This document shows, in pieces, positions 5,465 to 52,664 of a DNA stretch of 64,000 bases. The stretch covers positions 1 to 64,000 of the IMG/VR virus record IMGVR_UViG_3300047548_001236; one strand, 5' to 3'. The stretch's first letter is position 1. Each line of letters starts with the position of its first letter. The translations under genes and the position numbers were made by a program. Below the pieces are notes generated by a model. It searched no databases. It was given only the letters and a program-made list of their open reading frames with translations, and was not told the DNA's origin.

Positions 5465-6126
5465 TCAACCTCTGGGAATAAACATTTGCTTACGAAGTAA
5501 TCGACGTCTTGCTCGTCAAGACCCAACGCTTTCATTGTTCTAGGCGTGTGGGGATTCTGCTTCTGAAAATAAGCGTAGCGGTTGTGCGCATACGAAGAAG
5601 GCATGTCGTCCTCCACGTTCATAATGTTTACATACCAACGGGTGTTGGCCGTCACTAGCGAGACCACATCCTCAATTTCCTTTTCTGTTTGAATGTTGCC
5701 AGCGGCAATCATACTACCAGAAAAAATCGCACGAGCCCAATCAGGCAACTCGCGGTTTTTCGACCAGTTGTATTTTGACGCAACATCGGAAAAGTATTTT
5801 AACGCAGGGTCATTCAAATTGACAGGAGAGAAGTCGTGAAACGCTCCTGTTACTTTTGTCGGGCCAGATATCACATCAAACCCGTATATAGGAGCTCCTG
5901 ACTGCAGGTTTGGGAATATACACACGTGCATCATCCACAGCTTCTTACTTTCGCGAGCGTCGACAACGTCAATGTGAGCGCGTCGAAACTTGTCCGACTT
6001 CCATGTCAGATTGACCCACCCAGGACGATTGAACCTATCCATCTGATCCTCTTGATACCTTTCAAGGGATCGATCAAAAATAGTTTCAATCTCCCTTTGG
6101 AGCTTTATTAGAGGATCCCACATCAT
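5461..6126 (-). CDS. pcyX: Ferredoxin-dependent bilin reductase (PcyX/PcyA-like)
   Basis: FRRAHI, MMHVCIFP, PIYGFD, GAFHDFSP, LPDWARAIFS, QKQNPHT motifs; adjacent to heme oxygenase. Confidence 0.8.
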   Translation of the reverse strand: MMWDPLIKLQREIETIFDRSLERYQEDQMDRFNRPGWVNLTWKSDKFRRAHIDVVDARESKKLWMMHVCIFPNLQSGAPIYGFDVISGPTKVTGAFHDFSPVNLNDPALKYFSDVASKYNWSKNRELPDWARAIFSGSMIAAGNIQTEKEIEDVVSLVTANTRWYVNIMNVEDDMPSSYAHNRYAYFQKQNPHTPRTMKALGLDEQDVDYFVSKCLFPEVE

Positions 6127-8244: not shown

Positions 8245-9036
8245 ATGTCTATTTATACACCTTATACCTATCTTATAGGATGGTCTTCAATAAGTAAATA
8301 TTATTATGGCGTCCGTTTTGCGAAAAACTGCCACCCAAGTGATTTGTGGGTGAAGTACTTCACCTCTTCCAAAACCGTAGCTGAATACCGTAAACTTTAC
8401 GGTGAGCCTGACGTGATTGAGGTTCGAAAAACATTCACAGATAAACACTCGGCAATTTTGTGGGAGGAGAGAGTGCTCCGAAAACTAGATATCAAGCACA
8501 ACGAAAAGATGCTTAATGCGAACGTTGCAGGCGCAATCGTGAAGAATCTTGATCACGCAAAAGGAAGACCGAGTAAACTCAGAGGCAGATATTGGACGGA
8601 GGAACAGAAAGCGAAGCTCAGAAAACCAAAATCAGTCCCTAGTCCGTTAAAGGGAAAACAATTGACAGATGAACATAAAGAGAAGCTCCGTGCTGCTAAA
8701 CGCGACTATAAACCGTGGAACGCTGGCAAAACTGGCCTACAGAGTCATTCGAGCGAAACAAAAGAAAAAATGCGGATGGCTAAGATCAAGTCAAAAGTCA
8801 TTATATTTTCAGAATGCCCTTGCTGTAAGGAAATAAAAGTTAAGCCAAATCAAACTTTCTGTAGCAATTCGTGTAGAGCGAAACACAACGCACAAAAATT
8901 ATCAGCTCAGGGAAAATTTGGATTTCAGAACAAGTCTAACCAAGATGCTGCGCAGTTAGCTAGAAGGCCCGTTGGGTTATACGGTGGAGCCCATACCGCA
9001 GACTCAATCAAGCAGCTAGGCGAACCTGTGGCTTGA
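8245..9036 (+). CDS. Homing endonuclease, GIY-YIG-like with NUMOD3 repeats
   Basis: YTYLIGW...YYYGVR, HSSETKEKMR repeats; late promoter TATAAATA at 8174-8181; antisense to its neighbours. Confidence 0.8.
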   Translation: MSIYTPYTYLIGWSSISKYYYGVRFAKNCHPSDLWVKYFTSSKTVAEYRKLYGEPDVIEVRKTFTDKHSAILWEERVLRKLDIKHNEKMLNANVAGAIVKNLDHAKGRPSKLRGRYWTEEQKAKLRKPKSVPSPLKGKQLTDEHKEKLRAAKRDYKPWNAGKTGLQSHSSETKEKMRMAKIKSKVIIFSECPCCKEIKVKPNQTFCSNSCRAKHNAQKLSAQGKFGFQNKSNQDAAQLARRPVGLYGGAHTADSIKQLGEPVA

Positions 9037-9336
9037 AATTATCGTTTGCAATGTTTGTTGCAGTTATTATTGTCTTCGCGGTAACGGCGCTTAGATCCCG
9101 GTAGCTCCATCCTGCCTAGTCCGCCTGTCGATCCTATTTCGAGCCCATCAAAGATACACTTGCTGATATCCTGTTAGATTTCAACTTGACCCACTACAGA
9201 TCAAAGTATCTAACACCGCTTCCGTTATCAGTCCGGTAGGTAGTTAACCTGTTTCCTTTGGCAAGTGTATCTATGGTGGACCCGCTGGGTACCGCCCCCA
9301 GGTCCAGAACGTGTTCAGTGAATATCATCACTACAA
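8962..9336 (-). ncRNA. ssrA: Circularly permuted (two-piece) tmRNA
   Basis: Acceptor piece ends GGGGGCGGTACCCAGCGGGTCCACCA (9274); intervening segment 9147-9273; coding piece starts GGGCTCGAAATAGGATCGAC (9146); tag ANDNFKPQVRLAA* (9008-9049); G3.U70 pair. Confidence 0.93.
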
Positions 9337-9339
9337 TTG

Positions 9340-9370
9340 TATTTATACTAGATCATGCTGAACAAGTCAA
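9340..9370 (-). promoter_or_regulatory. Overlapping sigma70-type (TTGACT-17-TATAAA) and T4 late (TATAAATA) promoter for tmRNA
   Basis: TTGACTTGTTCAGCATGATCTAGTATAAATA. Confidence 0.75.
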
Positions 9371-9500
9371 CCGCGATCGTATCTTCTTTGCTTTTCTTCG
9401 TAGGTGTCGTATCTTTCGGTCTCGCTTCCCATCAACTCCTCCTATGAAAAGAGGGGCTAACCATTGGCCCCTCACGAGTCTATTACGCGACCAGACGTAT

Positions 9501-18569: not shown

Positions 18570-18674
18570 TGGTATCCCAGACAGGATTCGAACCTGCACC
18601 TACGTCGACTGATAACCAGCGGTAGGCCCTAGCTTTTTATGGCCCCGGTGTTTACCCACTTCCACCACTAGGAT
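18570..18674 (-). tRNA. Degenerate Leu-like tRNA with enlarged variable arm
   Basis: Acceptor, D and T arms and CCA intact; anticodon stem poorly paired. Confidence 0.5.
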
Positions 18675-18680
18675 ATTTTT

Positions 18681-18757
18681 TGGAGGTCGACCATGGACTT
18701 GAACCACGACCCCAGCTCTTGCAAGAGCTGTACATTAACCAATTTTGCTAATCGACC
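18681..18757 (-). tRNA. tRNA-Cys-like with 8-nt anticodon loop
   Basis: CAGCT-CTTGCAAG-AGCTG; U73; CCA. Confidence 0.7.
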
Positions 18758-19972: not shown

Positions 19973-20296
19973 TTATTTATATTTATCAACAATCGCGGCA
20001 GCTTTCTTCCGCCACTTTTTCAGCTCAATCACGCGCTCTTTGATGCTCGGATTGTTTTCGATGAATTTCAGAAGAGCCTCTTTTTTCGAGGTCCCGCGAC
20101 CATAGTTACCACCGTAAATGTAGTGAGCAATGCACCAATCGTTAGCGTTACCATTCAGACAGTAGGCGTGATATGCACCATAACGATCTCCGTTGATGCA
20201 GACGTTGCCGTGCTCGTCAAATCCCGCAACAGGGTAAAGTGCAGCGCGTTCAACAATTGCTTGAGCTTGACGCAGCGACGTGATCTTCGGAAGCAT
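19973..20296 (-). CDS. Hypothetical protein
   Basis: GAGG SD, 107 aa. Confidence 0.6.
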   Translation of the reverse strand: MLPKITSLRQAQAIVERAALYPVAGFDEHGNVCINGDRYGAYHAYCLNGNANDWCIAHYIYGGNYGRGTSKKEALLKFIENNPSIKERVIELKKWRKKAAAIVDKYK

Positions 20297-21237: not shown

Positions 21238-21313
21238 TGGCGGCCCTGGTGGGACTCGAACCCACGACCATGAGTTTTAGAGGCTCTAGCTCTACCATCT
21301 GAGCTACAAGGCC
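21238..21313 (-). tRNA. Amber suppressor tRNA (anticodon CUA)
   Basis: Loop CT-CTA-AA, canonical D/T arms, G73, CCA; two mismatches in anticodon stem. Confidence 0.8.
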
Positions 21314-23399: not shown

Positions 23400-24355
23400 T
23401 CTACTTGCAACGGGGAGTACGAGGGGATTTGCACCAGGCCCCTGAACCTTCTCCTCTTTTCAGCTCCTCAGGGAAGGAGCCTACTTCTGCACCTTGCTTA
23501 CTCCGCTCTGGAAGTAGAATATTGTTGCGGGTGAGATTACCCCGTATTGTGAGCGCCTTTCCGATGTACCACATCCCTTGCGAGGAGTGTTGTCGGGTTA
23601 TCCACAAGAGTCTTTCGATCATCTTGTATCGCTCAGTGCTGCCGTTTTTGAGGTCTGGCTGTTGACCTGTCGCATGTTACTACTCGTCCGTCTTTCCTAC
23701 GCCTGCCTTGCGAGCAGCTCAGAGGCGCTAACCTCCTACGTGATCATTCTGAACAACTACTCTAGCCTTGCGAGCCTTCGTAGGCCTGATTATCTTTCGA
23801 CTCAGGCATTAAGCACCTTTCGTAACACACCGGAGCAGACTTTCGCTTTTTGAATCTATGTTGCTTTGAACCAAAATCAAACGCTAATTTAATAGCTGCG
23901 AACCTACTGAGAAGTGCTGCTCCAGTTGCTCCACACCTTGTTAGATGCAGAATACCACACTCCTCCTGTCTTTCTCCTTGCGGGATACTCAACGTCACTT
24001 CACGAATCCGGTGTGACCCTTCCTCGTTGATGATCCTACACCGCCCTTCTACGCGAATAGTCGGACTATGTAGACACCTGTTGGACTTTTCCATTCGTTA
24101 GTTTGGCTGAAAACTGTTTGGGCGCCAACCCTCTTACACCTCACCGATCGGCTCTGGTGCTATCCTTTCGGACAGTCTTCCTAACTTACTGGATACCTCC
24201 TAGCTTCTAAGGCTAGAAGGGACTTGCTTTCGGTTTAATCCGAGTCAAGTCTATCCCAGGCTTGTATGAATGGACCATTTTACTGGCGCAGGTATGTAGG
24301 AATCCCTGCTTTGGGTGTGTTACCACACTTACCCTGACGACGTCATACCGCCATT
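23400..24355 (-). ncRNA. Candidate large structured ncRNA (about 950 nt)
   Basis: No credible ORF, many hairpins, downstream of a promoter and boxA within the tRNA island. Confidence 0.45.
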
Positions 24356-27947: not shown

Positions 27948-28078
27948 GTGTATTCTCCGTATGTTTTGTATATGTGCGTATATTTTTGTATGAACAATGT
28001 GTAGGCACGATGTAGTAATGCGTTCACAACACTATTTATACACGGTTACGCATACGATACAGCACCTACGAAGAAAAA

Positions 28079-28177
28079 TATCCTGGTTGGACTCGAACCA
28101 ACGGCCTGCGCTTTATTCCCAGCGTTTGGGTCCTTCACCATGAGGGAGCACTGCTCTACCGACTGAGCTACAGGATG
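28079..28177 (-). ncRNA. tRNA-like RNA with 34-nt anticodon loop, no CCA
   Basis: Canonical D and T arms; two hairpins in the anticodon loop. Confidence 0.6.
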
Positions 28178-41003: not shown

Positions 41004-41621
41004 CTAAGGTGTGTAATTACGACACTCTGATAATGACTGTATGAATACAATATTTTTGTAGGTATTCATCAGAATATGAACTTTCTCTGTCTGCGCTTTG
41101 AAAGCAGCGGGATTTTTAGGGTCGAGATACACGTCATATTTTGGCAGATAAAAATCAGGAAAATAATTGTGAGTCACTCCTGCTGTATCTATCCAAGGTA
41201 TAGGGTCTGGCCTAACCCATTCGATATTCAGTTCATCGAGCCTTTGAGCAAGTGCTAGTTCCCACGATGAGTCTAACATAACACCCTTATATTCGACAAC
41301 CCCTTTTCGCAGTCTTCTGTGCTTTGATGCGAGAGCTTTTACTCTGGTTTTTTGTTTCGATTCATCTGTATGTTTTCTACCGAGAAATGTTCTATGATCG
41401 ACGTGATCATACACACCGTTTTTATGGTGTTCAGACACTTTTTCAGCAGCTCTTTTTCTACCCTCTATGGTTTTAGCATTTCTTGCTTTTTCCATATTAT
41501 TAACGTAGGCGTTTCTTTTAGGATTTGAGTCACACCATCTACTGTGATTAGCCATCCAACCTTTTGGTTTATCGTCTAGATCATATGTTGTGTTGCAGTG
41601 TTTGCAAGACCCTTGCTTCAT
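41004..41621 (-). CDS. Putative PD-(D/E)XK homing endonuclease with NUMOD3
   Basis: GRKHTDESKQK; DSSWE...YFPDFYLP...YLDPK; late promoter upstream. Confidence 0.75.
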   Translation of the reverse strand: MKQGSCKHCNTTYDLDDKPKGWMANHSRWCDSNPKRNAYVNNMEKARNAKTIEGRKRAAEKVSEHHKNGVYDHVDHRTFLGRKHTDESKQKTRVKALASKHRRLRKGVVEYKGVMLDSSWELALAQRLDELNIEWVRPDPIPWIDTAGVTHNYFPDFYLPKYDVYLDPKNPAAFKAQTEKVHILMNTYKNIVFIQSLSECRNYTP

Positions 41622-41674
41622 TATAGCCTCCTTTTGAGACTATTTATAAAACGAAGGCTCTCGTTCTATCCAAA

Positions 41675-41800
41675 TGGCGACCCCGGTAGGACTCGAACCT
41701 ACAACCTACTGATTAGATCGTGCCTTAGAAGATTCGCACTTCACTGGGCTTCCATACCCTCAGGCCAAGTCAGTTGCTCTATCCATTGAGCTACGGAGTC
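41675..41800 (-). tRNA. tRNA-Arg(UCU) interrupted by a 50-nt insert in the anticodon
   Basis: Removing 41717-41766 restores a 76-nt cloverleaf with loop CTTCTAA. Confidence 0.85.
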
Positions 41801-41804
41801 GCTA

Positions 41805-41868
41805 TGTGTTTGGCTCTACCTCTAGGAACAAAGGCGACTTAGCTGCTTTAACCGCCAAGCAGTACCGA
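41805..41868 (-). repeat. Three-way-junction leader motif, copy 4
   Basis: GGTA-CTGCTT..AAGCAG-CTAAGTC-GCCT..AGGT-AGAGCCAAACACA. Confidence 0.7.
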
Positions 41869-41874
41869 TATATA

Positions 41875-41951
41875 TGGTAGGGGATACCGGACTTGAACCG
41901 ATAACCTGCGGATTATGAGTCCGACGCTCTAACCAATTGAGCTAATCCCCC
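41875..41951 (-). tRNA. tRNA(CAU), Ile2 or Met
   Basis: Loop CTCATAA. Confidence 0.9.
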
Positions 41952-42112
41952 ACTCTGTTTAGAATGATACACAATGCCATGATGTTCTCTGCTGTGTTTC
42001 AAGCAACACTTTCATGTCTACTCCAGATGGCGCACGCTATGTGTATCAATCAAAACAGAATTGATACTTACACTATTTAAGTGATATCGTCAACTATTAT
42101 TCTACTTTCAAC

Positions 42113-42211
42113 TGTGCGTGGGAGGAATCGAACCTCTGCCTGGCATCTTGCTGCCTACCCCGTATCCCTACGTCTCGGTCTTCCTGTGCTCCCACTACAC
42201 CATCACGCACA
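42113..42211 (-). ncRNA. tRNA-like RNA with D and T arms, expanded anticodon region, no CCA
   Basis: GTGCGTG/CACGCAC stem extended by a long flanking helix. Confidence 0.55.
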
Positions 42212-42463
42212 TGTAAAAGTAGAATTCTGTTTTCAGCTGCACTTTACAACGGAGCGACCGTTTTAACCTAGCCGTATCGAACGGCGACTCCCTTGCGCAA
42301 AGGTGAGCTCATTCCCCGATCGGAGATAAAGTACATGTGAAAACAGAATTTTCAGTGTTCCAAAGGAACACCTCCAACAAAGGAACTCACGGACACATTC
42401 GTCAGTTTGTTCTTCTGTCTCAGTTTCATGATCGGATTTCTCCTAGAAACATTCGTGCCAAAT

Positions 42464-42474
42464 TGTCAAAGAGC
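42464..42474 (-). promoter_or_regulatory. boxA antitermination element heading the tRNA operon
   Basis: GCTCTTTGACA downstream of a TTGACG...TAATCT promoter. Confidence 0.65.
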
Positions 42475-42531
42475 GTTTCGTTTGTGTCGTTAGATTAGCT
42501 TAGCTTCTTCGTAACGTCAACCCGAAAATTA

Positions 42532-42680
42532 AGAAACCCAGGATTTTTGATCCTGGGTCACTTTGAAGTAGAGATGTCGGTTTATCTTTACGTCGAAGTG
42601 ACCCTAAACATAGGGAGTGCACGGGCTACGCCGCGTCCCTGATTTCTATCTAGTGAGGATATGGAAGGTGAAGAAGTCAT
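42532..42680 (-). promoter_or_regulatory. Candidate leader-peptide attenuator (30-aa ORF, antiterminator, terminator)
   Basis: ORF 42588-42680; GGGTCACTT/AAGTGACCC overlaps terminator ACCCAGGAT-CAAAA-ATCCTGGGT-TTCTT. Confidence 0.55.
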
Positions 42681-42756
42681 TGGTCTCTCTTGGTTTGTGT
42701 TAGAGGTATTTATACCTTTTTGCAGCTATGATCAACGGGATTTGCAACTTTTTTTG

Positions 42757-43164
42757 TTATTTTTCTTCGATTGATATGATTCGATGTGGTGGCACATTTT
42801 CAGTGTGTAGGGATATATCCGCGCCCGTCAAATCGCCTGGATGTTTGTTGAGCAAGTCTTCGTGTGGATTGTCGGGATCGTATGCCATATCTGGTGTGAT
42901 GTGATGGGGGTGATTATCGTGTGGAGGTATTCTAAACTTGACGATGGTCTTTTTAACACTCGTGACAAAATTTGATGGCTGTCCTATAGTAGCAAAGATT
43001 CCATAGTCTCCGTTTATACCATGTTTCCGAAACGAATCAGCTACATGTCCGGGCGATTCATGGTAGGCGATTATACCGTTGGGCCAATGCTTACGTATAC
43101 GATCGTGAAACTCTCGTTCGTAATGATCATTGTCTTCCGTGATAAATTGCTTGAACGTTTTCAT
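42757..43164 (-). CDS. Putative internal head protein, ART-like
   Basis: MKTFKQFITE resembles T4 CTS MKTYQEFIAE; AYHES...KHGI...GIFAT. Confidence 0.65.
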   Translation of the reverse strand: MKTFKQFITEDNDHYEREFHDRIRKHWPNGIIAYHESPGHVADSFRKHGINGDYGIFATIGQPSNFVTSVKKTIVKFRIPPHDNHPHHITPDMAYDPDNPHEDLLNKHPGDLTGADISLHTENVPPHRIISIEEK

Positions 43165-47733: not shown

Positions 47734-48630
47734 CTAGCGCCCTTCATATTTCTCTAATACTGCTTTCAGCTCTGCAATCATTCGGTCGACTGGAACCTCG
47801 CGTTTGACAGCATTGTCCAGAGAACCGTAATGATGCTCTAGGCAATTCATGAGAAGCTCTTTGACTGCTTCCTCGTCAGGGGCGTGCTGCAAGGTCGACT
47901 TGACGTACAGCTCTTCAAGATGCCTTTCAGCTTCGTTGAACCAATTGCGTAGCTTCTCCTCAGTCCATTCCCCACGACGGATCGATTTCAGGATCTCACG
48001 ATTCGCTTCGATATCAAGATCATGCTCGACAAGGATCTGCTGAGCTTCAAGAGCAAGTCGAACAACGTGATACGCAAACTTCACATCATAGCCAAACTCG
48101 TCGATTGAAGCCTGACGCTTTGGGTTCGAGGCATTAGCTTTCGTGCCGATCTTGTGAAGCTGAGCGTACGCGTATCCACGGAACTTGTGGTAGCTACCCT
48201 TATGGAGGAACAACTTGCGATTGTCTCGAACCATTTGCCCAATCTTCGATGCATACAGAACGCACCGTTGTGGGACAAACAAACTGTCGCACATGTTCGG
48301 GTTGTTTTCCATACACAGGTGGAAGTACTTCACGATCGAATAGATACTGAAATCGTATTCCTGACGAGCCTCAGCATCCATGATGTGGTGTTCCTGATAT
48401 TGTTCGAATCGCTGGATCTGTCGACCGAACCCAAGGATTTCTCCTCTTAGATGAGGGAAGACATCTTCCTTAGGCGGAATACAGAAACCATACACGTCCA
48501 TATCAGACGTATCGCTAGACACGCCATAGGCAACAGAACCCATGATCACCTCATAGTGAACATTCTGAGGCAGCCACTTAGGAGGAGCGATGAGCCCCTT
48601 TTGCTTCATTAGTTGAACACGAGATGCCAT
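47734..48630 (-). CDS. Pol-beta superfamily nucleotidyltransferase
   Basis: GSVAYG...SDMDVYG; NPN; YDVKFAYH..RL. Confidence 0.88.
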   Translation of the reverse strand: MASRVQLMKQKGLIAPPKWLPQNVHYEVIMGSVAYGVSSDTSDMDVYGFCIPPKEDVFPHLRGEILGFGRQIQRFEQYQEHHIMDAEARQEYDFSIYSIVKYFHLCMENNPNMCDSLFVPQRCVLYASKIGQMVRDNRKLFLHKGSYHKFRGYAYAQLHKIGTKANASNPKRQASIDEFGYDVKFAYHVVRLALEAQQILVEHDLDIEANREILKSIRRGEWTEEKLRNWFNEAERHLEELYVKSTLQHAPDEEAVKELLMNCLEHHYGSLDNAVKREVPVDRMIAELKAVLEKYEGR

Positions 48631-49068: not shown

Positions 49069-49486
49069 TGTATTTCTCCTTGTATGTAGCCATCATATAT
49101 TGCTCGAGTTCGAAGGCTTGCCTTTCCCAAGGCAACTCAAAATAGTCAACCTCATGAACATTACCATTCCATGTGGACTTACGCGATCCTTCACCTAATG
49201 TCAACATACCACTTATGATCTGATTAACGTGAACCATTTCGTGAAATAACGTTGCGATGATGTCCTCTTTCGATGCGCGACGATTGACACGTATAGTTGC
49301 TTGTGTGTCATCATCCTGTTCAACGTCAGCATCCCCGTACTGTGGAAATACGATATCATATGTAAACAGTATCTCAATAGAAATGTCCTCGGGAATCCCG
49401 AGGACATCGCACGCATGGTTGATCACTGTATCGAGCTGCTCATATGATAACTTTCGAGTTGGTAAGTTATCAGCGAAATATATCAT
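49043..49486 (-). CDS. HExxH metallopeptidase-like protein
   Basis: TLFHEMVHVNQ...PWERQA. Confidence 0.7.
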   Translation of the reverse strand: MIYFADNLPTRKLSYEQLDTVINHACDVLGIPEDISIEILFTYDIVFPQYGDADVEQDDDTQATIRVNRRASKEDIIATLFHEMVHVNQIISGMLTLGEGSRKSTWNGNVHEVDYFELPWERQAFELEQYMMATYKEKYNGIYRNGR

Positions 49487-50835
49487 CAGCTAATCTCTTC
49501 GAGGTCGTCGATGAACTGCTCTTTCGGAGTAGTCGTCTTCCAGTATTTGATCTGCTTCTCAACGTCTTTGATCTGCTTTGCCAGCTCCTTGACCATCTCG
49601 TCAGTCAGGCTGAGCAGGTTGATGGTCAGCAGCCGATCGACGTCACTCGCCAGAGCGCTTGTCGTAGAAAGGATTTGTTTTTCAACGTCAGCCTTCTTCT
49701 TGTTCTTGAACTGGATTTTTTCATCCAACACAGCCTGGATGAACTGCATCTTGACATCGAGCCAACGTGCTTCCTCGGTGTTCAATTGCAGTTGATTGTC
49801 GATACGCTTCTGCAGAATCGTTGAACGGTAGTCGCAAAAGTCGACGATCAAATCCCGCTCATCAACATATTCTTTCAGACGTCCGTTGTGATCGATGACA
49901 GTCAGGTTCTCAGAAAGCGGCTTAGACAGCTTGAACTCTTTGATGATCTTATCATCGTCCCAAAGAGCAGAGATCTGCTGCTTTAGTTTAACCTCAAAGC
50001 GGAATCCATCTTTATCGCACATATCATCGTAGCTGACGATGTCTCCCTTCTCTTCGAGCTTGTCGAGCACTTCGACATAACCCTCACGGTCGAAACCGTA
50101 TGGGATCTCAGTGATCAGAAGAACCGTCTTGCTCTTGCGTTCAAACTTGCCGTTGCAGTAGTACTTCTGCTCTTGCTCATTATAGATCACCTCACCGTTG
50201 AAATGAGGATATTTGACTTTCGTCCGCTTCTTGATCTTGCCTGTCGTGACGTATTCCTTACACGCTTTGATAAGATCGACAGGGTCACGAGGAAGGATGT
50301 TGGTTGCGAAACCTGTTGCAATCCCTTTGATCCCATTTGCGAGAACCAAAGGAATCACTGGAACGTAGAATGCAGGCGGCTCATGTTCCGGATCAGGGTG
50401 AACAGGTGACAGCTTAACGTCCTTGATATACTTGTCAAAGTTGCTATGCAGCTTCGAGTATGTGTAACGCGGAGCAGCAGCGGACTGAACTAGCCTCGTG
50501 CCAAAGCTACCACGTCCTTCAACGAGGCAGATGTTGTTCGACCATTCAGCCGCCATCAATTGACCAGCACCTGCAGCGGCAGACTCGCCGTGGTTGTATC
50601 CATAGTCAGAAACAACGCCAGCGATTGCACTGACCTTCTTGAACTCGCGCTTCGAATTGACAATCGAGCTGTATAGGTAGAATCGTTGAACAGGCTTCAA
50701 TCCGTCAATCATATTCGGGATTGCACGAGATTCGACGGTATACATAGCAAACGAACGCCACTCGTTGTTGGCAATCGAAGATACAGGATAGAGACGAACA
50801 TCGTCGTCTTGGAAGAATTGTGTAAGATTGCTCAT
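49486..50835 (-). CDS. 52: DNA topoisomerase II medium subunit gp52
   Basis: RAIPNMIDGLKPVQR, YNHGE, AAPRY. Confidence 0.95.
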   Translation of the reverse strand: MSNLTQFFQDDDVRLYPVSSIANNEWRSFAMYTVESRAIPNMIDGLKPVQRFYLYSSIVNSKREFKKVSAIAGVVSDYGYNHGESAAAGAGQLMAAEWSNNICLVEGRGSFGTRLVQSAAAPRYTYSKLHSNFDKYIKDVKLSPVHPDPEHEPPAFYVPVIPLVLANGIKGIATGFATNILPRDPVDLIKACKEYVTTGKIKKRTKVKYPHFNGEVIYNEQEQKYYCNGKFERKSKTVLLITEIPYGFDREGYVEVLDKLEEKGDIVSYDDMCDKDGFRFEVKLKQQISALWDDDKIIKEFKLSKPLSENLTVIDHNGRLKEYVDERDLIVDFCDYRSTILQKRIDNQLQLNTEEARWLDVKMQFIQAVLDEKIQFKNKKKADVEKQILSTTSALASDVDRLLTINLLSLTDEMVKELAKQIKDVEKQIKYWKTTTPKEQFIDDLEEIS

Positions 50836-52664
50836 TTTGTCATAAACTCCTTGCGTAGGTTCGAGTCGTTACCAAACATCATCTGGAAGTATTCAGACTT
50901 GTCGACAACAACAGTATCGAACACAGGCTCGTTGAGAATCCGACTATACTCCTGTTCGGTCAAAGATCCAAGCCCTTTGATGTAGCGGTGCGTGTATCCC
51001 TTGCTGTTCTGCTTGAACGTGTTTGCTTCTTCATATGTGTAGAACCACTTGGTGTCCTTGCCGTTGGAAGAGATCATGATCGGGGAGCGAGTGATTTTAA
51101 CACGCTTCTCTTCGAGAAGTCTCGGCCAGAACTTGTACAAGAATGCGACAATCAGCGGCGAGATGTGACCGCTACCATCATGGTCGGAGTCAGTCAATGT
51201 CGCAATGCTTTGATACGTCATGCTATCGACACTGTCTGGATCACTGATATCCAAGCCAAGCACAGCAACAAGCTCGCTCAGCTCCTTGTTCTTCAACACC
51301 TCGGCGGGCTTCATATCCCACGTGTTGAGGATCACACCACGAAGAGGATATGCACCGATCTTAGAAGGATCGCGAACCTTGAGCAAGAAGCCCATAGCTG
51401 AATCCCCCTCGACCAAGCACAGAGTAGCTTTGTCGTTGTTTGCTGCAATGTGTTTTGCAACCTTGACCTTTTTCAGCTTTTTCTGCTCTTTCTTAGCATC
51501 GCGATATTCATCTGCTTCCTTCTTGGCAATCTGAGCGGCAATGACAGGCTCGACAATATCATCAGCAGCCATTAGCTTCTTGGCGATGTACTTGAAGTCG
51601 TGAGCCGTAGATCCTTCAAAGTGCTCTTTGACATTCCCTGCCGAGTTGGTCAAGCGCTCTTTAGTTTGGCTGTCAAACTTGGGATTGACGAAGTTGCGAG
51701 CAAACATAACAAACGTGAGGCCATTCTTCACTACTGATTTTGCGACTTCAATCTTATGCTTCTTCTTAATCATTGCGAGAAGCTCGTCCACGACGCCGTT
51801 AACAATAAAGTCGACATATGCGCCACCCTGACGAGTGTTGACCCCATTGACGAAGCTGGTCGTCCGGAATCCATCGTCCGATGCAGTGAAGAAGAACGAC
51901 AGGTTGTCTGTCTTTTCGATGATCACGGAAGCCTGCTCATCAGCGTAGAGAGCAGCGTACTTCTTGAGATCGTTGACCTCGATCTTGTTCTTATTGAACG
52001 AAAAGGTGATCTCAGGAAAGGCCATTTGAAGGCTAGTCAGACGATCGTGGATCAATTCCACGGTGTCGAAATCAGCCAGAGACTTGCACTCAAACAGAGA
52101 GAAGTCTGGAATGAATGTCACAGACGTGCCGCTTCCTGCGTGACGTGACTTACGCTTTACATCGATGTTTAACCCACCGTCGGTGCAATTGACCTCGACG
52201 ATCTTCCCTTCTCTCCAGGTGTGACCTTTGAAGGACGTAGAAAGGAAGTTGGTAGCAGACGATCCGACCCCGTTGGTTCCGATCGTCACTCGCTCGCTGT
52301 CGAAAGACGTTCCAGCATTGACACGAGTCCAAGCTGCAACCGGACGAAGGATCTTTTCGCCAGACGCAGCATCGAGAATCTCATCCTGAGGAATCCCACG
52401 TCCGTTGTCTGTGATAGTGACAGCATCCTCATCGACCGAGACGTCGATACGGTTTGCATGCTTGAAATTTGTTCTGATTGCTTCGTCGATGGAGTTGTCG
52501 AGAATCTCATCGATCATTTTGGAAAGTGCGGGAACGTATGTCGCTTTCTTCCACTTTCCGAGTACGAATCTCTCTACTTCTTCTTTCGAGGAAGATCCCA
52601 TGTACATCCCCACACGCAGCCTCACGTGATCTCTTGGAGATAGAATCTGAAATTTTTCCGTCAT
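50832..52664 (-). CDS. 39: DNA topoisomerase II large subunit (fused gp39+60)
   Basis: EILDNSIDE, DNGRGIP, EGDSA, PLRG, DSDHDG, YIKGLG. Confidence 0.95.
   Translation of the reverse strand: MTEKFQILSPRDHVRLRVGMYMGSSSKEEVERFVLGKWKKATYVPALSKMIDEILDNSIDEAIRTNFKHANRIDVSVDEDAVTITDNGRGIPQDEILDAASGEKILRPVAAWTRVNAGTSFDSERVTIGTNGVGSSATNFLSTSFKGHTWREGKIVEVNCTDGGLNIDVKRKSRHAGSGTSVTFIPDFSLFECKSLADFDTVELIHDRLTSLQMAFPEITFSFNKNKIEVNDLKKYAALYADEQASVIIEKTDNLSFFFTASDDGFRTTSFVNGVNTRQGGAYVDFIVNGVVDELLAMIKKKHKIEVAKSVVKNGLTFVMFARNFVNPKFDSQTKERLTNSAGNVKEHFEGSTAHDFKYIAKKLMAADDIVEPVIAAQIAKKEADEYRDAKKEQKKLKKVKVAKHIAANNDKATLCLVEGDSAMGFLLKVRDPSKIGAYPLRGVILNTWDMKPAEVLKNKELSELVAVLGLDISDPDSVDSMTYQSIATLTDSDHDGSGHISPLIVAFLYKFWPRLLEEKRVKITRSPIMISSNGKDTKWFYTYEEANTFKQNSKGYTHRYIKGLGSLTEQEYSRILNEPVFDTVVVDKSEYFQMMFGNDSNLRKEFMTK

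Follow-up and report, generated by a model that had tools for sequence, protein, structure and literature searches.

A candidate leader-peptide transcription attenuator at the upstream edge of the tRNA array of a T4-like giant phage

Introduction

To our knowledge, the manner in which phages regulate their tRNA genes is essentially unknown. The genes themselves have been discussed both as compensating for codon usage and as offsetting the action of tRNA-destroying host enzymes (for example PMC10264068). The window examined here, a stretch of 64,000 nucleotides of the 283 kb IMG/VR contig IMGVR_UViG_3300047548_001236, belongs to an uncultivated T4-like giant phage, and raises the question of how transcription enters a large tRNA island. 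Nearly all genes of the window are encoded on the minus strand, as is the island, which extends from ~42.2 kb down to ~12 kb and involves at least 38 tRNA genes, a GOLLD RNA, and a permuted tmRNA. The large subunit of the topoisomerase II encoded upstream is ~50% identical to proteins of KVP40-like Vibrio phages, which are the nearest cultured relatives.

The initial annotation of this locus had proposed that a 30-codon ORF acts as a translation-sensing attenuator, in which full translation would allow termination and stalling would allow read-through into the tRNA genes. The ORF and its peptide as quoted there, the inverted repeat GGGTCACTT/AAGTGACCC, and the terminator that overlaps it are all present on the minus strand, at a site that forms the upstream edge of the tRNA array (Table 1). 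The comparison of relatives and the predicted folds described below somewhat favor the reading of this site as a ribosome-mediated (leader-peptide) transcription attenuator, for which we infer translation of the ORF, activity of the terminator, a dependence of read-through on the position of the ribosome, and the nature of the physiological signal.

Table 1. Coordinates within the window of the leader region, of the elements behind it, and of the topoisomerase genes; (-), minus strand
Feature	Position (strand)	Details
T4-type topoisomerase II subunits	49486-52664	
TTGATC, -35-like hexamer	42730-42735 (-)	15 nt to TATAAA, 17 nt to TAAATA
T4-type late promoter TATAAATA	42707-42714 (-)	exact match; 26 nt upstream of leader ATG
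Purine tract AGAGAG, sole candidate ribosome-binding site	42685-42690 (-)	conserved
Leader ORF, 30 codons + TAA, peptide MTSSPSISSLDRNQGRGVARALPMFRVTST	42588-42680 (-)	ATG at 42680, TAA 42590-42588
P1 mid-ORF hairpin, AGGGA...TCCCT with inner stem	42612-42640 (-)	predicted folds
P1' CCCTA/TAGGG hairpin	42602-42615 (-)	RNAalifold consensus of group A
Antiterminator hairpin	42555-42604 (-)	5' arm 42604-42593 (last ORF codons), 3' arm 42566-42555
Intrinsic terminator	42525-42559 (-)	stem 42559-42535, then T-rich tail TCTTAATTTT
Sigma70-type promoter TTGACG-17-TAATCT behind terminator	42492-42520 (-)	read from sequence
Conserved leader RNA of tRNA array	42337-42474 (-)	17-sequence alignment, 10 pairs with compensatory changes
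boxA-like GCTCTTTGACA	42474-42464 (-)	
GNRA-tetraloop hairpin	42450-42423 (-)	covarying
Invariant core CAGAAGAACAAACTGACGAA	42417-42398 (-)	

Content of the tRNA island

The island carries a full-length GOLLD RNA (23528-23965, minus strand; 195 bits), and the tmRNA gene is of the permuted, two-piece, alpha-proteobacterial type (8962-9374, minus strand). One tRNA with a CTA anticodon (21238-21313, minus strand), labeled Pyl by ARAGORN, is a candidate amber suppressor, and evokes the question of whether some phage genes read TAG as sense; TAG ends none of the 19 leader ORFs described below, which terminate in TAA (groups A, C, D, and E) or TGA (group B). For another tRNA-like gene (18681-18757, minus strand), ARAGORN reports a four-base anticodon (tgca), which could represent either a frameshift-suppressor-like tRNA or an artefact. 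Near the head of the array, a tRNA-Arg(UCU) with a 50-nt intron in its anticodon loop and a weak tRNA-Cys(GCA)-like sequence, enlarged by an insert of 26 nt, together account for the minus-strand stretches 41675-41800 and 42113-42210, and several other Rfam matches of excessive length for a tRNA occur in the island (28078-28177 and 18573-18674). Endonuclease-like ORFs, each with its own TATAAATA, are found among the tRNA genes on the minus strand (41004-41621 and 36323-35934), the former with matches to PHROG endonuclease / Holliday junction resolvase families, and are consistent with homing elements. A few kb upstream of the array lies a gene for a nucleotidyltransferase of the RlaP family, of the RNA-repair pathway (47734-48630, minus strand), which is found in the same neighborhood in contig L003.

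Relatives of the leader region

Relatives were identified through metagenomic homologs of a 135-residue protein encoded just upstream of the leader, which led to contigs L003, L005, and L016, and further loci were obtained from viral, metagenome, and genome collections by means of a conserved 20-mer located behind the terminator. The 20-mer matches in L021, L022, L030, L032, and L035 (metagenome) and in L039 and L041 (genome) lie in unrelated sequence and were discarded as chance occurrences. Searches of cultured phage genomes, at the DNA and protein levels, with the region and the neighboring gene gave no match. Including the window, 19 leaders (18 distinct sequences) were collected, which fall into five sequence groups: group A (the window, L016, L019, L029, L037, L003, and L005), group B (L013, L031, L020, L024/L026, L033, L034, and L040), group C (L025), group D (L017, leader at 819-991 on the minus strand), and group E (L023, leader at 5479-5634 on the plus strand, L028, and L036). 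L018 carries the downstream element without the leader, and in L042, where this element is also present, the contig ends too soon to show the leader region. Conservation in related phages, which had been proposed at the outset as a check, is thus borne out by 18 other metagenomic leaders, with both covariation and complete sequence turnover.

The order of elements is common to the 19 leaders: a late promoter, an ORF of 27-35 codons, an antiterminator, a terminator, a sigma70 promoter, a boxA leader, and the tRNA array. Such an array follows the cassette on the same strand in the nine relatives with enough sequence, eight of which have no tRNA before it, L028 having one just upstream. Upstream protein genes vary among the relatives, the cassette from TATAAATA onward remaining attached to the array, which indicates that it belongs to the tRNA genes. 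From its recurrence, the layout of the leader is judged to be the product of selection, beyond what chance would give. No Rfam family corresponds to the leader, and an nhmmer profile revealed no second copy in the window. In two more distant relatives (L006:612-1011 and L008:553-900), the homolog of the 135-residue protein is followed by TATAAATA and then by 350-400 nt of G+C-rich, structured-looking non-coding sequence, and not by a leader and a tRNA array. Public runs labeled as RNA that contain a close relative were considered as a source of transcript ends, and were set aside on finding that they hold contigs, probably of DNA.

Promoters around the leader and within the island

The octamer that precedes the leader ORF matches the late-promoter consensus reportedly described for T4-like phages. 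TATAAATA occurs 15 times in the window, where 1.4 occurrences are expected, and 13 of the 15 lie on the coding strand; the exact motif, its strand-biased excess in the window, and the presence of T4-like topoisomerase II genes place it in the T4-type late class. Each of the 16 leaders of groups A-D has it at a distance of 26-37 nt upstream of the ATG, and group E displays the variants GATAAATA/TATAAAAT. By contrast, the promoter named in the initial annotation, TTGATC-17-TATAAA, stands only in part: both hexamers are present, but their spacing is shorter than stated, the 17 nt being reached at TAAATA. A TTGAC-like hexamer at the corresponding distance is confined to group A, being absent from groups B and C, so that a sigma70-like promoter cannot be retained as the key upstream element; TTGATC is doubtful as a functional -35, and the conserved promoter is TATAAATA.

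The caveat that another promoter lies downstream of the terminator was well founded, since TTGACG-17-TAATCT (42520-42492) is conserved in relatives: TTGAC(A/G)-17-TAnnnT follows the T tract in every one of them, in some as tandem copies. A GAATC motif is common to the spacers of these promoters, as in TAGAATCAG and GAGAATCGG, and the T tract of the terminator occupies the place of an UP element. In addition, nine further coding-strand TATAAATA sites are distributed from the leader to the far end of the tRNA array, several of them immediately ahead of a tRNA or another RNA, as at 19981 and 16111. A further copy (9347-9340) precedes the tmRNA and falls inside the span of the tmRNA match. The sigma70 promoter behind the attenuator would permit early transcription of the array without passage through it, and, together with the late promoters of the island, would leave the attenuator to gate only late or upstream-derived transcription into the head of the array. 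On this arrangement, the element is expected to gate only part of tRNA transcription, and the main entry into the array is most plausibly the downstream sigma70 promoter with its rrn-type boxA leader.

The leader ORF

Between TATAAATA and the leader ATG lies an A/C-rich stretch of 26 nt that includes AGAGAG, and an AGAGAG/AGAAAG tract is conserved 5-11 nt before the ATG. Pairing with an E. coli-type anti-Shine-Dalgarno sequence, which may not be that of the host, is weak, at -0.7 to -4.9 kcal/mol where the genes of the phage have a median of -6.6, and the Shine-Dalgarno match is no better than at random positions. The ATG is nevertheless conserved and the frame kept, as in a short ORF under selection to be read: the frame is open in 19 of 19 leaders, over 27-35 codons, and the other two frames are closed by 1-4 stops in all 15 leaders tested from groups A-C. 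Counted from the ATG, the antiterminator arm begins with its first G after 76, 79, 73, 70, or 67 nt in groups A and C; for group B the corresponding values are 87, 84, 93, or 90 nt. Within the groups this implies at least seven indel events, all of them multiples of three; if each event is given a one-in-three chance, the probability that all seven would be of this kind is estimated at ~0.0005. The frame in which the arm itself is read differs between group A (AGG GTC ACT) and group B (GGG CTG TTT), and the stop codon is shifted along with it. These comparisons support the existence of selection on the frame of the leader ORF. The peptide is little conserved except for an MTS start and a D-x-N-x-G-R stretch, whose glycine is encoded by GGA, GGC, or GGT. 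The main targets of selection therefore seem to be the RNA and the act of translating it.

The suggestion that the ORF samples many different codons is correct in so far as 25 distinct codons are found among 29, but this places the leader only in the top 6% of gene windows, and its codon adaptation is that of random sequence, which hence offers no argument for its translation. Codon adaptation was also abandoned as a test for a slow leader, being unable to separate a slow leader from non-coding sequence. Tandem codons for a cognate amino acid are lacking, and there is no run of any one codon. Codons 2-10 are, however, rich in serine, threonine, and leucine, which make up 4-8 of the nine in the individual leaders counted and 5-7 of the nine in representatives of the five groups, against a proteome frequency of 0.19; serine is nearly always encoded by UCN, L023 having also one AGT. 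This bias may also just mirror the presence of G-poor, unstructured RNA around the start site. In the attenuator model, a ribosome that stalled at codons 2-10 would leave the antiterminator free.

Antiterminator and terminator

The last codons of the ORF form the 5' arm of a hairpin in which GGGTCACTT (42604-42596) pairs with AAGTGACCC (42563-42555), and this repeat is paired in the minimum-free-energy fold of 42710-42500, whose z-score against shuffled sequences is -3.5. The antiterminator forms a 12-pair helix with a predicted free energy of -17 to -25 kcal/mol. In an alignment of 15 sequences, 95% of the cells of this helix are paired, as opposed to 27-55% in controls in which the 3' partner was slid by one to three columns. 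Four pairs have changed on both sides (U:A/C:G, C:G/U:A, A:U/G:C, and C:G/U:A), and single compensatory changes have arisen independently in L003, L025, and L040. Between the leader ORF and the array there follows an intrinsic terminator, with a G+C-rich stem of 8-10 bp that is 98% paired across 14 sequences. Its lowest 3-5 pairs employ the (G)ACCC that also belongs to the 3' arm of the antiterminator, and the two structures are mutually exclusive. Their overlap amounts to 3-5 nt in groups A-C, and in groups D and E it extends to 8-9 nt. The two full-length states of groups A-C are close to equal in energy, and which of them is the minimum-free-energy fold changes from one relative to another, so that, given the small overlap, anti-termination could be partial in these groups.

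In groups D and E the arms are unrelated to those of group A (AGACCCCCTTG/CAGGGGGTCT and GGAGGGTTT/AAACCCTCC) and the architecture is kept: once more a small ORF ends in codons that make up the 5' arm, and this arm can pair with 8-9 nt of the terminator's own 5' arm. Such unrelated arms in one architecture would settle the question of design, and, with the covariation described above, they indicate that the alternative between terminator and antiterminator is real.

Further helices are predicted within the ORF. P1 is the first link of a G3-C3-G3-C3-G3 chain and could possibly serve as a pause or synchronizing hairpin; equivalent hairpins of other sequence occur in groups B and E (CAGGAT/ATCCTG, CCGGA/TCCGG, and CCGGAT/ATCCGG). 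P1', according to the model, would tie up the GGG within the antiterminator 5' arm, and would thus act as an anti-antiterminator; its fifth pair covaries (AU in three sequences, CG in two, and GC in one), and the hairpin is broken in L037. Within the GGG-CCC-GGG-CCC-GGG chain of group A, P1 and P1' can, as modeled, pass the choice of helix along.

Position of the ribosome and predicted order of folding

In group B the stop codon is part of the 5' arm of the antiterminator. It follows the arm directly in group D, at a distance of 2 nt in groups A and C, and at a distance of 7-10 nt in group E, and a terminating ribosome would consequently cover this arm. When only the RNA up to the loop of the terminator is folded, the full base of the antiterminator is predicted for every one of the 19 leaders but L040, which has A.C as its outermost pair and lacks the full base in the minimum-energy fold; the central G:C pair of the antiterminator has a probability of 0.99-1.00 in all 15 leaders of groups A-C. 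Conversely, masking of the RNA from -15 to +12 nt around the stop codon, to mimic a ribosome, yields the full terminator in 19 of 19 leaders under constrained folding. Geometry and constrained folding are consistent with the position of the ribosome as the putative deciding factor. Taken together, helices that appear to be real, selection on the frame, the placement of the stop codon, and the predicted order of folding fit, in all five groups, a logic in which full translation would lead to termination and stalled or absent translation to read-through, and to this extent the attenuation scheme first proposed is supported; control of the island by this element alone, however, is not, in view of the promoters described above.

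The boxA leader and the RNA modules behind the terminator

The RNA that follows the downstream promoter is an element of ~135 nt that is far better conserved than the neighboring proteins, is present in at least 17 metagenomic loci, and has no family in Rfam. GCTCTTTGACA, at its start, matches the boxA of E. coli rrnB, TGCTCTTTAACAATTT (PMC2176067), and agrees with the gamma-proteobacterial boxA consensus GYTCTTTAANA (PMC5725501) at 10 of 11 positions in the window and at 11 of 11 in L025 and L018. These matches suggest that Nus-factor antitermination may operate on a phage tRNA operon. Behind the hairpin with the GNRA tetraloop and the invariant core there follow a second covarying hairpin and the arm TTCTGTTTTCAC (42337-42350), which is complementary to CTGAAAACAGAA (42226-42240, minus strand), located beyond the next RNA module. 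A 25-codon ORF within the element (42429-42352) is not conserved, its frame being broken in L003 and its ATG missing in L013, and the stretch was therefore treated as RNA.

The first genes behind the element are a structured module, the tRNA-Cys-like sequence, a tRNA(CAU), and the tRNA-Arg(UCU). The module (42245-42330, minus strand), which separates the boxA leader from the first tRNA-like gene, is closed by an acceptor-like stem (ACTTTA...TAAAGT), contains GTTCGAT motifs resembling a T arm, and received no assignment from ARAGORN or Rfam. Long inverted repeats (TTCTGTTTTCAC/CTGAAAACAGAA and also TTCTACTTT/AAAGTAGAA) bracket each RNA module, with further repeats downstream, in the manner of the RNase III processing stems of rRNA operons. 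A downstream CTGACGA...GAAA stretch was considered as a hammerhead and dropped, as no Rfam family matched it. With its strong sigma70 promoter(s), its boxA, and its long stems flanking structured RNAs, the array looks like an rRNA operon.

Proposed mechanism and alternatives

The course of events under the attenuator reading would be as follows. Transcripts initiated at the late promoter TATAAATA, as well as those coming in from genes further upstream, would carry the 30-codon ORF, and as the RNA emerges its last codons, GGGTCACTTCGA, would pair with TCAAAGTGACCC. This pairing would occupy bases that the lower part of the terminator stem requires, so that the polymerase would read on, pass the sigma70 promoter, pick up the boxA leader, and enter the tRNA genes. 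A ribosome at or near the leader stop codon would instead cover the 5' arm, allowing the terminator to form and the transcript to end at ~42530. Slow, stalled, or absent translation late in infection would then bring more transcription into the tRNA array, and efficient translation would bring less. The signal could be the supply of charged serine, threonine, and leucine tRNAs, or general translation capacity. More speculatively, and with rather little confidence on our part, the leader may be seen as part of a translation homeostat, in which a late leader rich in serine, threonine, and leucine gauges the speed of ribosomes as a virus-encoded sensor of tRNA supply. Demand from late genes, or a host defense that cleaves tRNAs, would slow decoding and let polymerases escape the attenuator; the escaped polymerases would gain boxA-dependent resistance to termination and transcribe the rRNA-operon-like tRNA array.

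Part of this anatomy could also be explained by an ordinary small late gene, whose 27-35-residue peptide would be the product, whose terminator would simply end the mRNA, and whose hairpin would be a stabilizing 3' structure, with no switching involved. The ORF does have a late promoter and a terminator of its own and a conserved frame, and the MTS start and the D-x-N-x-G-R stretch look conserved as peptide, with synonymous variation. Most of the peptide, however, is unconserved between groups; the pairing is kept even though the frame of the arm differs between groups A and B (AGG GTC as opposed to GGG CTG); and the ORFs of groups D and E end in sequence that can pair with the entire 5' arm of the terminator, which a plain gene end would not require. 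The ribosome-binding site is weak, and the cassette always travels with the tRNA array and never with any protein gene. We consider this explanation unlikely. Less likely still is a switch that is set by a factor other than the ribosome, be it an RNA-binding protein of phage or host, a small RNA, or a tRNA, with the ORF being incidental. The alternative helices are indeed well supported whether or not the ORF is translated, the Shine-Dalgarno match is weak, and the nearby boxA/boxB-like site may point to protein-mediated antitermination in the region, but without translation there is no explanation for a frame that has survived at least seven 3n indels, or for a stop codon that is always placed at the 5' arm; moreover, no Rfam family, the T-box included, matches the leader, and the five groups have no conserved single-stranded recognition motif in common.

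A further alternative is that the terminated RNA of ~150 nt is itself the product, acting in trans as a late small RNA, and that read-through is irrelevant. The dedicated unit of promoter and terminator and the strong structure of the RNA (z = -3.5) would suit such a role, and trans-acting attenuator RNAs are documented, rnTrpL being one example (PMC6614838). Sequence turnover between groups is nonetheless complete outside the paired arms, leaving no conserved seed region, and no target was identified from the present data, which makes this explanation highly improbable.

Comparison with known systems

The attenuator reading places the phage leader next to the leader-peptide attenuators of amino-acid operons (trp, his, leu, thr, ilv, and pheA). 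In both, a short leader ORF is followed by an intrinsic terminator, and the end of the ORF supplies the 5' strand of an antiterminator that cannot coexist with this terminator; a ribosome at the stop codon would favor termination. The mid-leader hairpin could play the pausing role of trp 1:2, and the alternating G3/C3 chain of group A recalls trp segments 1-4. The phage element differs in that its leader has no codon run for one amino acid, in that its untranslated default is predicted to be read-through and not superattenuation, and in that it is found in a phage, behind a late promoter, with tRNAs and other RNAs downstream in place of biosynthetic enzymes.

Antibiotic-responsive, ribosome-mediated attenuators have been found by Term-seq, for example upstream of vmlR, lmo0919, and ermK, where the slowing or stalling of ribosomes on a short upstream ORF switches the terminator to the antiterminator. 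These drug-responsive systems, which serve resistance genes of Firmicutes, represent the closest functional analog of a sensor of translation capacity, with the difference that nothing in the phage leader points to a specific stalling peptide or ligand. The rrn and lambda nut sites (boxA, boxB) resemble the neighboring element, with its GCTCTTTGACA and covarying GNRA-tetraloop hairpin, and not the attenuator itself; an element of this type would confer resistance to termination past the attenuator. T-box riboswitches also couple the status of tRNA to the choice between terminator and antiterminator, but they bind uncharged tRNA directly, without an ORF, and the T-box reading of the leader was dropped since no Rfam match to this family was present at E <= 1 within 41600-42800.

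Concluding remarks

Full-text literature searches revealed no account of a phage tRNA array that is headed by a translation-coupled attenuator or by a boxA leader. The comparisons presented here support what appears to be a classical mechanism in a new setting, in which it is encoded by a phage, lies behind a late promoter, and leads into tRNA genes that are preceded by a boxA leader. If the attenuator reading is true, it would represent the first viral use of classical leader-peptide attenuation, and the first case in which such attenuation governs tRNA genes rather than biosynthetic enzymes. The element is compact, at ~190 nt, and its predictions are directly testable in reporter constructs. 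For the biology of the phage, it suggests that late tRNA transcription may be adjusted to the performance of the ribosomes.
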